A stretch of 64,000 nt of DNA from Chrysemys picta bellii. Taxonomy: Eukaryota. The stretch is taken from contig NC_088807.1 of NCBI RefSeq assembly GCF_011386835.1, forward strand, positions 25,296,001 to 25,360,000, given 5' to 3'. The notes beneath the pieces were generated by a model. That model was not told the DNA's origin and did not search any database. It worked only from the letters and a program-made list of their open reading frames with translations. Both the position numbers and the translations under genes were made by a program. This document shows positions 19,261 to 27,230 of the stretch, piece after piece. How positions within the stretch are numbered: the first letter of the stretch is position 1; each line of letters starts with the position of its first letter.

Positions 19261-19855
19261 GGCTGGGGAGGAAGAGGTGTGTGAGCGGAAGCTGGCGATG
19301 CGGCTGCCTCTGGGGTGGGGCGCGGGGGCTGTTTATACAGGGAGCCCATGAAAGGGGTAGAGTAGGGAGCCAGGACTCCTGGGTTCTCTGCCTGGTTCTG
19401 GGAGGGGAGTGGGGGCTGGTGGTTAGAGCAGGGGGGGGGAAGCCAGGACTCCTGGGTTCTCTCTCTGGTTCTGGGAGGGGAGTGGGGGCTAGTGGTTAGA
19501 GCGGGGGGGGCAGGGGAGAGGGCTGGGAGCCAGGACTCCTGGGTTCTTCAGCACTCACCCACCACGTGACTGCAGTTAAGTTTCTCCCTGGCTGTGTGCC
19601 TCAGTTTCCCCTCTGTTGTGTGCAGATAGCTCGTCTCCCGGCTGGTTGGTGTCTCCTTATCTGCTCCCCGGCGCTGTGAGAGCTCTCGGGGGCGGCGCCA
19701 AGGAGGGCTGAGGGTCGGTCACTTGCCATCTGCGGGGGCGGGGGCCGGTTCCTCGTTCCCGGGGAAACCGAAACTGCCCCAGGCAAAGCGATGAGTCACC
19801 GGGGCTCTTTTCGGAGTCAGCTTCCCCTTGGGGGTGTGGGGGGAACGCCCTGCTA

Positions 19856-20212
19856 GCGCCCAGGGAACCCAGGCGTCCGGGCTCCCAGCCCCCGCCCTGC
19901 CAGCGCCCAGGGAACCCAGGCGTCCGGGCTCCCAGCCCCCGCCCTGCCAGCGCCCAGGGAACCCAGGCGTCCGGGCTCCCAGCCCCCGCCCTGCCAGCGC
20001 CCAGGGAACCCAGGCGTCCTGGCTCCCAGCCCCCGCCCTCCCAGCGCCCAGGGAACCCAGGCGTCCGGGCTCCCAGCCCCCGCCCTGCCAGCGCCCAGGG
20101 AACCCAGGCGTCCGGGCTCCCAGCCCCCGCCCTGCCAGTGCCCAGGGAACCCAGGCGTCCTGGCTCCCAGCCCCCGCCCTGCCAGCGCCCAGGGAACCCA
20201 GGCGTCCGGGCT
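19856..20212. repeat. 47 bp CpG-rich VNTR (about 7.5 units) between TREX2 and EMD
   Basis: Unit GCGCCCAGGGAACCCAGGCGTCCGGGCTCCCAGCCCCCGCCCTGCCA. Confidence 0.95.
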
Positions 20213-20489
20213 CCTCCGCCGCTCCCTTCCCGCCACCATGAGACCCCACCCACTCCCCTCCCGGAGCACAGATGGGACCCAGGCGTCCTGGCTGGGTCCC
20301 AGCCCCCAGCCCAGCTCTGGGGCAGCAGGAATTCACGGAGCCACAAACAGCCCCGGGCCCCGCACGGCAGCTACTAGCCACGTGGGGAAACTGAGGCAGA
20401 CGGTGGGGGGGAGGGGCAGAAGGTTGCACGAGGCTTCCGGGCGCCCCACCCCGCTGGGATCCGGGGGGGGGGGGAGTTTCCCGGGGGGG

Positions 20490-20823
20490 GGGGGAGCGTT
20501 GCGAGAGGGACAGGAGAGGGATGGGCGGGGCGTTGGTAGGGGCGGGGCGCGCTGGAAGGGGCGTTGCTAGGCTGGGGGGGGTGTTGCTAGGGGCCGTGCA
20601 AAATGGGCGGGGCGTTGCTATGGACGGGGCAGGCTGGAAGGGGCTTGCCAGGGGCGGGGCGCGCGGGAAGGGCGTTGCCAGGGGGCGGGGCGTTGCCCAG
20701 GCCCGGCCCCTCCCCCTCGTGTCACTTCCGGTCGCTGCTGGCGCCTCCTGTCCTGGGCCTGCTCCGCGCGCCGGAACCGCGGGCCCCGACCCCCCCCCGG
20801 CTGTGCTCCCCCCCGGCCGGGCC
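20490..20823 (+). promoter_or_regulatory. EMD CpG-island promoter: several GC boxes, GTTGCY RFX-like half-sites, ETS site
   Basis: Several GGGCGGGG; GTTGCTAG at 20563 and 20583, GTTGCTATGG at 20614, GTTGCCAG at 20674, GTTGCCC at 20692; CACTTCCGG at 20723; strong Kozak GCCATGG at 20821-20827. Confidence 0.7.
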
Positions 20824-23800
20824 ATGGAGCGGTACCGGGGGCTGACGGACACCGAGCTCATCGCCATGCTGCAGCGCTACGGCATCGCGCACGGGCCCGT
20901 CGTGGGTACGGGGCGCTGCGGGGGGAGGGGGGACGGGGGGCGCTGCGGGGGGAGGGGGGACTGGGGGCGCTGCGGGGGGGAGGGGGGACGGGATGGGGGA
21001 AGTTGGGGCGCTGCGGGGGGAGGGGGGACTGGGGGCGCTGCGGGGGAGGGGGGACTGGGGCGCTGCGGGGGGAGGGGTATCGGGATGGGGGAAGTTGGGG
21101 CGCTGCGGGGGGAGGGGGGACTGGGGGCGCTGCGGGGGGAGGGGTATCGGGATGGGGAAGTTGGGGCGCTGCGGGGGGAGGGGTATCGGGATGGGGGAAG
21201 TTGGGGCGCTGCGGGGGGAGGGGTATCGGGATGGGGAAGTTGGGGCGCTGCGGGGGGAGGGGTATCGGGATGGGGGAAGTTGGGGCGCTGCGGGGGGAGG
21301 GGGACTGGGGGCGCTGCGGGGGAGGGGTATCGGGATGGGGGAAGTTGGGGCGCTGCGGGGGGAGGGGACTGGGGGCGCTGCGGGGGGAGGGTATCGGGAT
21401 GGGGGAAGTTGGGGCGCTGCGGGGGGAGGGGGGACTGGGGGCGCTGCGGGGGGAGGGGTATCGGGATGGGGGAAGTTGGGGCGCTGCGGGGGGAGGGGGA
21501 CTGGGGGCGCTGCGGGGGGAGGGGTCTCGGGATGGGGGAAATTGGGGCGCTGCGGGGGGAGGGGGGACTGGGGGCGCTGCGGGGGGAGGGGTCTCTGGGT
21601 AGTGGGGGGACTGGGCGCTGCGGGGGGAGGGGTCTCTGGGGCGGGGGGAGTTGGGGTGCTGCAAGGGGGGGCAATCTGTGAGGGAGGGGTAGGGCAGGGC
21701 AGCATGGGGGCCCACCTGACCCCCCCCCCTTGTCTCCCCTTCCCGGCCCCCAGGATCGACCCGGAAGCTGTACGAGAGGAAGATCTGCGAATACGAGAGC
21801 CAGCGCACTAAGCTATCGTCCCCAGGGGGGGCTGGGGGCTACTCAGGTGAGTGGGGGGCCAGGAGGGGTGGGGAGGGGCCAGCAGCAGCAGCCACTGACG
21901 CCCCCCCCCCTCCCTTTCCTGTGTGTCTCTTCCCTCCCGCCCCCCAGATCCCGGCACCACCGAGACCTACATTCGGGAATCTTACAGCTACCCCCGGCAT
22001 GAGGAGCGGCGCCGCTATGGGGCAGATGGTGAGAGGGGGCTGTGGGTCAGGAGTGAGGGGCACCTGTGGGGGGTGAGCAGATGGTGAGAGGGGGCTGTGG
22101 GTCAGGAGTGAGGGGCACCTGTGGGGGGTGAGCAGATGGTGAGAGGGGGCTGTGGGTCAGGAGTGAGGGGCACCTGTGGGGGGTGAGCAGATGGTGAGAG
22201 GGCGCTGTGGGTCAGGAGTGAGGGGCACCTGTGGGGGGTGAGCAGATGGTGAGAGGGGGCTGTGGGTCAGGAGTGAGGGGCACCTGTGGGGGGTGAGCAG
22301 ATGGTGAGAGGGGGCTGTGGGTCAGGAGTGAGGGGCACCGGTAGAGTTTTCCAAGACTTGGGGTACCGTGGCCGAGGTGTCTGAATGTTCCTGTCTGCTG
22401 TGGGGGTGGGGCTTCGAGGTGCCTCCCACTGACCCCCCCGTCTCTCTCTGCCCCCCAGACTCCAGCCCCACCACGACGTACACGCGGGAGTTGTATGATT
22501 TCCCTCGTCGTGAGGGTCGCACCGGCTACCTGGGCGATGGTGAGTGGGGGGCGGGTAGAGGGGGCAGCATTTCCTCTGGTGGGGGTGGCAAGAGGGGGAT
22601 ACAGAGCAGCGAGGATGTGGGGGGAATACGAAGGCAGGAAGGGGAGTCTGGTACGATTCCCTTGGCCTGGGCTTGACACCCCATCCCCCGCGCCATGTTC
22701 ACATTCCTGCAACAGGGAGTTCCAGGGGTGGAGCTCCAGTGGGGAAGGGGAGAGCCGTGCCCAGCCCCCCGTCTCACCCCACTCCTCTCTGCCCCCAGAC
22801 ATGGACACCGAGTCCTACGAAGAATCTTCCTCCTCCTCCTCCTCCTGGCTCTATGGGGCAGCCCCAGGTCCCCTGGGGGAAGCCACTGCCCGCCAGCCGG
22901 TAAGTCAACCCCTGGGTGTGGGGGATGGGACATAACCTCCCCAAATAACGTCTCAGGGGTGCGGGCGGCCTGGGAAAGGCAGAAGGCACGGGTGTCTCTC
23001 TCTCCCCCCACCCCTTTGGCGCTACCAACTTTCCAGTCCCCTCACTCCCCCCTGCTTGGTCCTACCACCTCCAACCCCCAACTCTGCCCCCGTCCCAGCA
23101 CCGTGGGGGGCAATCCTGGATTCGGCCGCTGGCCCGGCCTGAAAAACTCGAACCTTAAACCGTTTGCTGCCAGGAGATGTTGGGCCCAGCGGAGCCGGAA
23201 CTGAATTTTGGCAAAAGTGTCTAAAAACCGATGCAACTTCCCGGGAGCTGATTTTCGGCCGGGTCGATAAATTCTCTCGTCGGTAGTTTGCCCCTGTAGG
23301 AAAGATAAAGAACCAGCCCCGGAGAGTTTAATACAGACAGAAACACTGCCCGTCTCCGGGACACCGTCTTGTGCCGCGGCGTTACGTCCCCCAACGCGGT
23401 CAGCTCCCAAAACGACCCTCGTAATGGATGATTTGACAATTTACCAGCCTCTCCCCAGCCCTAAAACCCAGTCCGGTTCTTTGGCTTGTTCTGTCCCCTG
23501 GCCTCTCACGTACCCCCGAGCGTGTCCTGGGCAGAACATTTCTACTCGGGACAAAGTTCTCCTGTTCTAAGAGCGAAACCCACTTCAGCTTCGCAAAAGG
23601 AGGCGGCGTGTATTTGAACAGGGTGATCGGGAGCCGGAGGCCGGTTCAGGGCAGGGACCGGCTAGAAATGTATTCTGAGATACTGTTCTGGTGATAGCGT
23701 GAACTTTCTTTGTGTACGTGATGTGATAAGACGTATTGAGGATATTGTGTGTGTGTGTGTGTGTAATATAACCCCACAAAAGTGAGTTTCAGGAAACTTT

Positions 23801-26402
23801 GTTTTGAAATTGGATTTCTTTATTTCGGGGCTAAAATTTGGCTTGGGAATTTGGTTCCCCTGCCAGTTCGGGTTCATTTTCTGTTCTCTCACGGTGGTTA
23901 CGTTATTTGAACAGGCTGTGTGAGATCGAGACAGAAATTACCCGCCGTTCCGCCTCGTGAGATAATGTCGTCATCTAAACAAGTCGAGATTTTCCCCCCA
24001 AAAGGCTCTTTTCTAACCAAAAAAATAATTGTTTGGAGCCCGTCCATTTTCTGGGTAATTTACAGTCGATTTCTTGCCTGGCGCCCGTTGTTTGCGGATG
24101 GGGTTCGGAAGCGAGTGACTGTCGAGCTGGGTGACGTTTTTCAGCCCGTGGCAGCGTGCGGCGGAGAGATTCTGCGGTGGGACCAGTCCTGGGGCTCTCC
24201 CCCGGTGGGGCGTCCCCATTGCAAAGCCTGGGCGGGCGATCACGCTGCATTGGGAACCTGGGTTTACAATTGCCGGCCCTGGGGCTCCCGGCTGAGACTG
24301 GGCTGCGTAGCCGGGGCTGAGGGTTTTCTGACCCTCTCCATGTGCGTGTGGACCGTCGAGGGGCCCGCACCTGACAGCGAGCCCAGGGCAGCGATGCTTT
24401 TGAGAGTCGCTCGGACTGGGGGGGCTGGCTGGGCTTGTGAAGCCACAGCCAGTGTTTCGCCGTTCGCCCCCCAGGGGCGTGTGGGCACCGCTAATTTATC
24501 CCCCTTCCCCCCGCAAAGTCGTAAGTTAAATCTCCACAAGCGGCAGTAGGGTCCCTTTTCACTCGCCGCGGCCACTCAGGTTAGCCGCCAAATTCAGCCC
24601 CCATAGGTAGGCCCGGCACAAATCGGCTTTCATTGATTTTAATAATTGCGTCAGATAACGGTTGGTTTTGAGCCCCTTTTATTCCAATTTTTTATTTTAT
24701 GGGTTGAAATGTTCTCAGGTGAGAAATTCTGGGTTTGAAGCATTTTTTTTTTTTAAATCCATTTACATTTTCCCAAGTGGGAACAACAGTGGAACGATCG
24801 TGGCCCCTGAGGTTTAGCCTGAATTCCCTCTGCGGATACTCTAGGATCAACCCCACACCTAGAGATACTCGCCTGCTCGGCTAAATTGGGGGGGTTAAGC
24901 ATTTTTATTTTAGTCTATTTCAATTTGCACAGTTGCGGGCAGTTACGGGGGAAAAGGGCAGGGATCGGGGGAGGGGAGACGATAATTATTTGATGACCCT
25001 GGACAGCGAGATTGAAAAATGTAAACTTCATACCCGTTAAAACAGCAACATCCCGTATCCAAGTCCCCGGAAATACACTAACGAGCGCTCCCGCCTGTCC
25101 ATTTCTAGTATTATCCCTTTTTCTTTTTGGTTCTGTGTGTCTGGGGAAATTGAGGCTTACCGGGATCGACCGCTAAAAATCGACTCCGTCCCGTTGGATT
25201 TGCGGTCGACGCGGTGGCAAATGAAAATTGAATCCCACCCTTCTAGTTCCTCCCTTTTTATTTCTGAGCAAGGTCTCAAACGTGAGGTCCAGGCCCGTCA
25301 ACGCTCTCGTTACGTCGCGGGGGGCTGGGCGAGATGTTACACCCACTTCCGGTCAGTCTCCAGGAGAGTTCTTCGCCGCCGCCATCTCTTGGAGAGGCGG
25401 CTGCAGTAGAGGGACGGGAAAACACCTTTTTACTCCCCTTTCGAAGGGAGTTAAATGAAGTGGCCTTAATTTAGTTTCAAGTCTCTCTACTCTAGTATCA
25501 AAGTGCAGCTGCAGGGAGGGTCCATAAGGCACCTATGAACCCAGCAATGCTGGCCACACTGTTCCTTCAGTTAGGGTGAGCTGTCCCCTTCCTCCATTTG
25601 TACCCCCCCAGACCGCTTGCCTTTAGTATCTCATGTCTTCTAGTATCTGCTGTCCCCACAACAATAGGAGGCAGTTTGGGTGTGCAGGATGTGGGGAGGG
25701 GAAACCCCAGTTTAAGGCTTGTATTGCAGCACCGGCCCTGTAGAGGGGATATGCAAATTACCCCCTAGGCAGAGCCGGAGTATGCAAACGAGGGAGGGCG
25801 TGGCCTGCATTACCAGGCTGCCCCTGTAGAGGGGGTTCTGCCCCCCCTCGCTGATGGTGCGTTTCCTTGCAGATCGGAGAGGCCGCGTCCTACACCCCGA
25901 GCAGGTCGGAGGAGACCGAGAGGTGAGATGGGGTCGTGGCGTGGTTGGGTACCCCTTGGGAGGGTGCTACCTGGCATTGAGCTGGGGCAATGGGGGGTGG
26001 GGGGTGGGGACGGTGTGGTTTGTGGGGGGTGCTGCTAGCCGTGGGGGCAGAAGTGGGGGAGATGCCAGGATGGGGGGAGCTGTGGGTGCTGGGGGGCTGT
26101 AAGCACTAACCGCTGCCCCCCCCTTTCTTTTTCCCTCGCCGAGCAGGGACGGCATCTCCTACCAGCGGGTCTGCCAGGCTCGCCCGGCCCCGCCCCCCAT
26201 GCGGGTGGAGCCGCGCCGCGCCATCCACCCCCTGCCCCGCGGGGGGCCGGGCGGGGCCGCAGGGGGAGGCTCCCGGCGCTTCCTGCCTCTCTGGCTTCAG
26301 CTGCTGCTCTTCGGGGTGCTCGCGGCCTTCCTGGTCTACGTGTACTGCGCCCTGCAGGGCGGCGCCGACGACAACCCGTTCGCGCTGCACCATGAGGAGT
26401 GA
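20824..26402 (+). CDS. EMD: Emerin (LEM domain, tail-anchored inner nuclear membrane protein), 247 aa, 7 coding exons
   Basis: Exons 20824-20905 (MERYRGLTDTELIAMLQRYGIAHGPVV), 21754-21846 (GSTRKLYERKICEYESQR...), 21948-22028, 22459-22539, 22799-22899 (DTESYEES...YG...ARQP), 25873-25922 (50 nt), 26147-26402 (RRAIHP...LPLWLQLLLFGVLAAFLVYVYCALQGGADDNPFALHHEE*). They sum to 744 nt in frame. The LEM domain, RRAI motif, PLWxQLLLF TM segment and NPF tail match emerin. Confidence 0.92.
20906..21660. repeat. G-rich VNTR filling EMD intron 1
   Basis: GGGGCGCTGCGGGGGGAGGGG followed by GACT or TATCGGGATGGGGGAAGTT, repeated more than 20 times. Confidence 0.95.
22023..22340 (+). repeat. 55 bp tandem repeat (about 6 units) in EMD intron 3 that includes the exon 3 donor site
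   Basis: CAGATGGTGAGA at 22023, 22078, 22133, 22188, 22243 and 22298. Confidence 0.95.
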
Positions 26403-26419
26403 GGGGGCACCCGGCCTGT

Positions 26420-27230
26420 CCCCTCTATGGGCCCACGACCCATTGCCCTGCCCCCCGACGCCCACGTCCCGTCTCTCAGCCCCCCTGTCCCGTCCCCCTC
26501 CTCCCCAGGCATCCCCAGGGGCCCACGTCCCGTCTCCCTGCCCCCCGACCCCCCAGGGGCCCACGTCCCATCTCCCTGCCCCCCGACCCCCCAGGGGCCC
26601 ATGTCCCGTCTCTCAGCCCCCCTGTCCTGTCCCTCTCCTCCCCGGGCATCCCCAGGGGCCCACGTCCCGTCTCCCTGCCCCCCGACCCCCCAGGGGCCCA
26701 TGTCCCGTCTCTCAGCCCCCCCGACGCCCCCAGGGGTCCACGTCCCATCTCTGTCCCCCCATCCTGTCTCCTCCCCCAGGGGCCCAGGTCCCCTCTCTCA
26801 GCCCCCCATCCTGTCCCCTCCTGCAGGGGCTCACCTCCCCTCTCTCAGCCCCCCTGTCCTGTCCCCCTCCTCCCCAGGGGCCCACGTCCCATCTCCCTGC
26901 CCCCCGACACCCCCAGGGGCCCACGTCCAGTCTCTCAGCCCCCCTGTCCTGTCCCCCTCCTCCCCAGGCACCCCAGGGGCCCACGTCCCATCTCCCTGCC
27001 CCCCGACACCCCCAGGGGCCCACGCCCCATCTCCCTGCCCCCCCGACGCCCCCAGGGGTCCACGTCCCATCTCTGTCCCCCCATCCTGTCTCCTCCCCCA
27101 GGGGCCCAGGTCCCCTCTCTCAGCCCCCCATCCTGTCCCCTCCTGCAGGGGCTCACCTCCCCTCTCTCAGCCCCCCTGTCCTGTCCCCCTCCCCCCGGGC
27201 ACCCCTGTCCCGTCTCTCAGCCCCCCGGCC
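26420..27230. repeat. C-rich VNTR in the EMD 3'UTR
   Basis: Recurrent CCCCAGGGGCCCACGTCCCATCTCCCTGCCCCCCGAC and CTCTCAGCCCCCCTGTCCTGTCCCC units. Confidence 0.9.

Follow-up and report, generated by a model that had tools for sequence, protein, structure and literature searches.

Tandem duplication of exons is a kind of event already known, and its classical cases are said to have been surveyed by Kondrashov and Koonin in 2001 and by Letunic et al. in 2002. Mutually exclusive splicing is frequent among exons duplicated in this way. Emerin is the protein of Emery-Dreifuss muscular dystrophy, and the human gene (EMD) has six exons. Exon 3 of therian EMD, 26 codons long, is the one with Y74, Y85, S87 and K88.

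The Src targets in emerin are Y59, Y74 and Y95, and BAF binding is down by 70% in the triple Y-to-F mutant (PMC3810338). Force leads to phosphorylation of Y74 and Y95, both of which are needed for nuclear stiffening (PMC13470575). These phosphorylation data come from human cells, and the turtle exon compared with the Y74 exon below is known by its motif and alignment.

In the painted turtle (Chrysemys picta bellii), EMD has two exons, exons 3 and 4, whose products we call modules A and B, whereas therians have a single copy of the module. Like the exons of classical tandem duplications, the turtle exons are homologous neighbours that agree in length and phase and are attributable to local duplication. 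Unlike the classical mutually exclusive pairs, however, the two copies do not replace one another: both enter the same transcript and make a repetitive linker longer. This is a real and ancient tandem exon duplication; we found no description of emerin exon duplication in the literature.

The emerin gene of the painted turtle and its paired exons

The window (the whole stretch of DNA analysed, 64,000 nucleotides) contains the painted-turtle EMD gene, which has seven coding exons (Table 1). Exon borders and phases were obtained by exact spliced mapping of P0017, the RefSeq protein 'emerin-like [Chrysemys picta bellii]' of 247 amino acids, onto the window, and RNA gave the same borders; an additional 4-nt 'exon' in the mapping is an artefact of its splice-first search. 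In tblastn searches the translations of all seven exons were identical to P0017 (100%) inside the exon borders, so the gene model with both exons is already public; two lower-scoring alignments overrun exon ends into introns. P0017 stood in for the protein of the window in whole-protein searches, and the last exon was used separately as a query.

The encoded protein has its LEM domain at the N terminus (Pfam PF03020, P0017 residues 4-41, E 2.1e-16; score 59.7 bits, cut-off 24), followed by a long linker, and its tail anchor at the C terminus. The anchor can be read in the last exon as a hydrophobic run of about 20 residues followed by a short tail; the stop codon is TGA at 26400-26402. With the last exon alone as query, phmmer retrieved emerins end to end (1.4e-44 to 4.9e-12), and the best full-length matches, from turtles, squamates, alligator, mammals and amphibians, are all named emerin. 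By these matches the gene is the orthologue of vertebrate EMD, not of LAP2, MAN1 or LEMD1. A tblastn search with P0017 gave a single locus and no second EMD copy within the window. P0017 is filed under two RefSeq accessions, XP_065427630.1 and XP_065427633.1, which correspond either to two transcripts or to two gene copies in the assembly.

Table 1. Coding exons of EMD and the intron 3 repeat in the window, followed by module exons of the species mapped in genomic DNA
Feature	Position	Strand	Length	Phase	Basis
EMD exon 1: start codon and first half of LEM domain	20824..20905	+		ends in 1	spliced P0017 mapping; RNA joint
EMD exon 2: second half of LEM domain and linker	21754..21846	+	93 nt	1-1	RNA joints; P0017 mapping
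EMD exon 3: module A (P0017:59-85)	21948..22028	+	81 nt	1-1	RNA joints; P0017 mapping
Tandem array in intron 3, 99% matches	22022..22339	+	55 nt x 5.8		Tandem Repeats Finder
EMD exon 4: module B (P0017:86-112), YDFP motif	22459..22539	+	81 nt	1-1	RNA joints; P0017 mapping
EMD exon 5: acidic, Ser-rich stretch with YEES motif	22799..22899	+		1 to 0	RNA joints; P0017 mapping
EMD exon 6	25873..25922	+	50 nt	0 to 2	RNA joints; P0017 mapping
EMD exon 7, coding: hydrophobic tail anchor and stop	26147..26402	+			sequence; RNA joint 25922>26147; phmmer
Module exons, Chrysemys, Eretmochelys and Emydura			81 + 81 nt	1-1	genomic mapping
Module exons, Alligator			81 + 87 nt	1-1	genomic mapping
Module exons, emu			54 + 60 + 72 nt	1-1	genomic mapping
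Module exons, Rhineura (worm lizard)			81 + 84 + 81 nt	1-1	genomic mapping
Module exons, echidna			78 + 63 nt	1-1	genomic mapping

AG stands immediately before each of exons 3 and 4 and GT immediately after, the shared end being GATG|GT. Aligned without gaps, they share 50 of 81 nucleotides and 13 of 27 amino acids, identity at codon positions 1, 2 and 3 being 19/27, 17/27 and 14/27; the observed nucleotide or amino-acid identity was reached by none of 100,000 shuffles. Likewise, a Smith-Waterman self-alignment of the protein segment scored 73, compared with 28.5 +/- 5.4 after shuffling (0/200 reached it). Exons 3 and 4 are thus a tandem exon duplication, being adjacent, similar beyond chance, and equal in length and phase; moreover, both copies are found in the mRNA, a further mark of such duplications. 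Both modules carry the short tyrosine-rich motif Y-x-R-E-x-Y-x-x-P-R-x-E ... Y, and among the three tyrosines of the module A peptide are those of a YSYP motif. A preliminary description, made from the letters of the window, had given the exon coordinates, the 81-nt lengths, phases, GATG|GT ends and identities of this pair, and every one of its figures was reproduced here. Its proposal that the exons are paralogues of equal length and phase is borne out by the shuffles, which never reach their identity, and by the P0017 mapping, which gives phase 1-1 twice; the doubled Y..P / Y motif that it described is likewise seen in the module alignments.

For comparison with mammals, the therian module was defined as the 26 residues by which the long and short isoforms of a rodent emerin differ. 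Therian modules align with turtle module B free of gaps and have in common with it Y-D-[FL]-P (YDFP in module B as against YDLP in the mammalian Y74 exon), two basic residues and E; in both, a second tyrosine follows 11 residues past the tyrosine of Y-D-[FL]-P. This gap-free alignment and shared motif argue that module B (exon 4) is the counterpart of the single mammalian exon 3 with Y74, and that module A is the extra copy. The first tyrosine of the therian module lies 14 residues ahead of its last lysine, a spacing that fits the published Y74/K88 numbering. Therian exon 3 occupies the same place as the turtle modules, with the LEM-linker exon before it and the acidic YEES exon after it. Its phase 1-1 is deduced from the 26-residue in-frame cassette, that of the sauropsid and echidna exons having been mapped directly. 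The therian modules differ in lacking the first conserved tyrosine (the T-Y-x-R-E part), whereas both turtle modules keep this third tyrosine.

The tandem array in intron 3 begins 7 nt within exon 3, so that the exon end and donor, GCAGATG|GTGAGAGGG, are repeated five more times; this 16-mer is present in six exact copies, 55 nt apart. Read-through into the array would meet a stop at the second copy, and a transcript spliced from one of the extra donors would be out of frame. Contigs of four RNA runs contain no joints from the extra donors, and the array is absent in Eretmochelys and Emydura. At 22305-22346, each of the four runs has a pile of many unrelated loose-ended contigs, by which the depth of that bin is inflated; from its appearance, this part of intron 3 is a piece of some dispersed repeat that is expressed. 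Between 20910 and 21675, intron 1 consists almost entirely of a minisatellite whose coding strand is rich in G and whose nested periods are 26-27, 39-40, 66 and 133 nt. About 600 nt upstream of the start codon, the GC-rich promoter region holds a 47-nt x 7.9 tandem repeat (19846-20214, 97% matches), and C-rich tandem repeats with periods of 38, 47 and 137 nt begin about 60 nt past the stop codon in the presumed 3' UTR (26460-27150).

Splicing of the module exons

Evidence for use of the exons came from RNA contigs of four runs (X1, X4, X9 and X14), which belong to four studies and three organisms and were inspected over the region 20750-26450; such contigs indicate presence, not isoform ratios or tissue patterns. 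Each run yielded one deep contig with six GT..AG joints, which after correction for the stated cut offsets coincide exactly with the exon borders. The joint between exons 1 and 2 (20905>21754) was found in all four, and the joints 21846>21948, 22028>22459 and 22539>22799 lie in single contigs in all four, placing exons 2-3-4-5 in tandem. Contig depth was 250-610 over exons as against about 5-12 over introns. Since both exons are joined within single deep contigs, the main mRNA holds exons 3 and 4 together, and because both are in phase 1-1 they can be included jointly without a frameshift. In exon 4, the sole difference between organisms B and C and the window is a synonymous T>C at 22491.

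Skipping of the module exons was found in annotation. RefSeq isoforms of four turtles (Caretta, Lepidochelys, Gopherus and Carettochelys) lack exon 4. Squamate models are annotated without the first module (Hemicordylus, Pogona), without the middle module (Candoia, Varanus, Pseudonaja) or without the last (Candoia, Erythrolamprus, Liasis), and one emu model lacks the first. In several mammals, too, there are annotated isoforms that skip therian exon 3, and one caecilian, like these, has annotated isoforms without its single module. Given such isoforms in turtles, squamates, mammals and a caecilian, the module exon family acts, at the level of annotation, as a cassette across tetrapods. Among the painted-turtle contigs no skipping joints were seen at a 5% share, a kind of data that loses rare forms.

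The preliminary description had held that either exon can be skipped, and that this would allow emerin isoforms not seen in mammals. As to the first part, of the two exons only exon 4 is annotated as skipped in other turtles, and no skipping was seen in the painted-turtle contigs; as to the second, the two-module form is indeed absent from therians, but isoforms that carry no module are annotated in mammals too. The possibility it had raised against itself, that one exon might never be spliced in and might not be conserved, is contradicted by the four runs and by the conservation of both exons in turtles.

Distribution and age of the duplication

Emerin sequences were collected by phmmer with the last exon and then by searches with Eretmochelys P0001 and alligator P0051. 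Exons were mapped exactly in genomic DNA of seven species including Chrysemys (Table 1), and every module exon so mapped is in phase 1-1; amphibian modules were judged from protein alone. At the protein level, both turtle modules are present in Pelodiscus, Chelydra, Mauremys and Chelonoidis, three modules in 14 squamates, and four in Elgaria, in which the middle one is doubled. Therian mammals and caecilians have one module each, and two salamanders and one frog have self-similar module pairs of their own (again from protein). The gene spans 328 kb in Ambystoma and 134 kb in Pseudophryne. Every sampled sauropsid has at least two module exons, and the two-exon state is normal for sauropsids, not a turtle oddity.

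Squamate emerin has the same kind of phase 1-1 exons in the same place, of 81-84 nt in Rhineura, and its first module is similar to turtle A, its last to turtle B. It differs in having an additional middle module, starting A-L-G-S-T-R-T-Y, of which the turtle has none, and in that RefSeq annotates isoforms lacking each one of the three modules. A search by tblastn for a remnant of the squamate or emu middle module in intron 3 of turtle or alligator gave matches at noise level only.

Some of the gene models call for comment. Between the two modules of the Pelodiscus sinensis emerin (P0023, 294 aa) lie about 50 unrelated residues, which look like a retained intron 3, so an annotation artefact. 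The emu EMD model (P0112, 144 aa; L004 3001-5085) has a Pro/Ala/Ser-rich tail and no membrane anchor, with probable errors or missing sequence in its 3' part. The emu is also the sole bird whose emerin was recovered by two database searches.

Both exons are kept in the sampled side-necked, soft-shelled and hidden-necked turtles alike, which places the tandem duplication earlier than the common ancestor of all living turtles. The distances agree with an old event: dS between the paralogous exons is 0.9-1.4 versus 0.11-0.39 when each exon is compared from one turtle species to another, and turtle modules are about 80% identical within a type versus 43% between A and B. In exons mapped across three turtle lineages, the 81-nt length, reading frame and splice sites are conserved. 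In three pairwise comparisons exon 3 has a dN/dS of 0.11-0.70 and exon 4 one of 0.33-0.66, values that rest on only 2-8.5 changes per class and resemble those of neighbouring exons. Both the great age and the purifying selection suggested in the preliminary description are therefore in keeping with what we found: frame, length and splice sites are retained, dN/dS lies at 0.11-0.70 (from only 2-8.5 changes per class), both exons occur in three turtle lineages, and comparable exons exist in alligator, emu and squamates. The comparison across turtles, crocodilians, birds, squamates and amphibians that it had suggested for dating the event thus recovered such exons in the turtles, alligator, emu and squamates, the amphibian pairs being known from protein.

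Beyond turtles, in a tree of 64 modules those of the first type are separated at 94/88 from those of the middle and last types, turtle A grouping with the first modules of other sauropsids. Turtle A shares 43% identity with alligator module 1, compared with 24% for turtle B, and turtle B shares 59% identity with emu module 3, compared with 43% with turtle A; squamate last modules, at 36% to turtle B and 34% to turtle A, have no clear preference. From these comparisons the duplication most probably occurred before the turtle-archosaur split, and probably in the sauropsid stem.

Alternative explanations and significance

The explanation that we consider likely as a whole is a tandem duplication that predates turtles, with both copies used and the extra module adding to linker function. 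By tandem duplication, one ancestral symmetric exon, in phase 1-1 and of about 27 codons, gave rise to EMD exons 3 and 4; both copies have stayed open, in phase and spliced ever since, so that turtle emerin has two tyrosine motifs in tandem. Other histories of the exon pair have to be weighed against this one. Exons that arise in tandem are often spliced in a mutually exclusive manner, and exon 4 is missing from the RefSeq isoforms of the four other turtles named above, so it could be asked whether one exon is a decaying pseudo-exon or whether the two exclude each other. Single contigs in four runs hold both exons at full transcript depth, however, and both are open, 81 nt long and flanked by AG and GT in three turtle lineages. 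Because the exons are included in tandem in the mRNA, neither is a pseudo-exon and the pair is not mutually exclusive; the spliced contigs rule out both readings, to which we give practically no credence.

A different question is how often the duplication took place. If the exon were a hot spot, it might have duplicated independently in turtles, crocodilians, birds and squamates, and the A/B likeness would then be convergent. Further events do occur, as in the doubled middle module of Elgaria and the pairs peculiar to salamanders and the frog, and AU tests, which had 27 aligned columns to work on, leave separate duplications unrejected at p 0.17 for turtles, 0.15 for squamates, 0.22 for emu, 0.21 for echidna and 0.055 for alligator. 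Yet the free tree is ahead of such clades by 13.9 lnL units in turtles and 9.4 in squamates, and turtle B groups with emu module 3 in a starred clade (96/91*). The first modules of four sauropsid lineages begin with T/S-E-T/S-Y/F and the last modules with D-P/S-S-P, and with at least two modules in every sampled sauropsid a single early event is simpler. We therefore regard repeated independent origin as improbable. The pair could also be older than we propose, the amniote ancestor already having had A and B, monotremes keeping both and therians having lost A. Echidna has two phase 1-1 exons at the same position (78 and 63 nt), of which module 1 falls on the A side of the tree and module 2 on the B/M side, and its module 1 is 43% identical to turtle A versus 27% to turtle B. 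On the other hand, a sauropsid-only profile gives echidna module 2 a score of 14.6 bits and module 1 none above 3 bits, identity between the two echidna modules is 45%, with their placement as sisters left unrejected by the AU test (p 0.21), and a second monotreme-like protein (P0007) has no module 1. An amniote age for the pair is conceivable, though we would not favour it.

Returning to a duplication that predates turtles, the additional module would, by analogy with mammals, add tyrosine phospho-acceptor and partner-binding sites to the emerin linker, which in mammals is regulated by Src and is found at the edge of the lamin-A-binding part. It may be that the number of modules grades the function of the linker, this number changing between lineages as exons are gained and lost, and within species as they are skipped. 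In a broader form, which we put forward as a speculation more doubtful than probable, the Y74-type module would be a cassette of variable copy number in tetrapods (0-4 per transcript), with at least two copies in the amniote ancestor, one of which therians would have lost, and its number would grade the Src-dependent mechanical response of the nuclear envelope. Turtles, crocodilians, monotremes and salamanders would then have two copies, squamates and the emu three, and therians and caecilians one, with skipping varying the number within species.

The mechanism itself is not new: proteins are known to evolve in this way, by tandem duplication of symmetric exons within low-complexity linkers. 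For genome annotation, the six-exon structure of human EMD would seem to be a reduced state, at least relative to sauropsids, and natural emerins with zero to four modules, counting proteins and annotated isoforms, would constitute a ready-made series for probing the function of the module.
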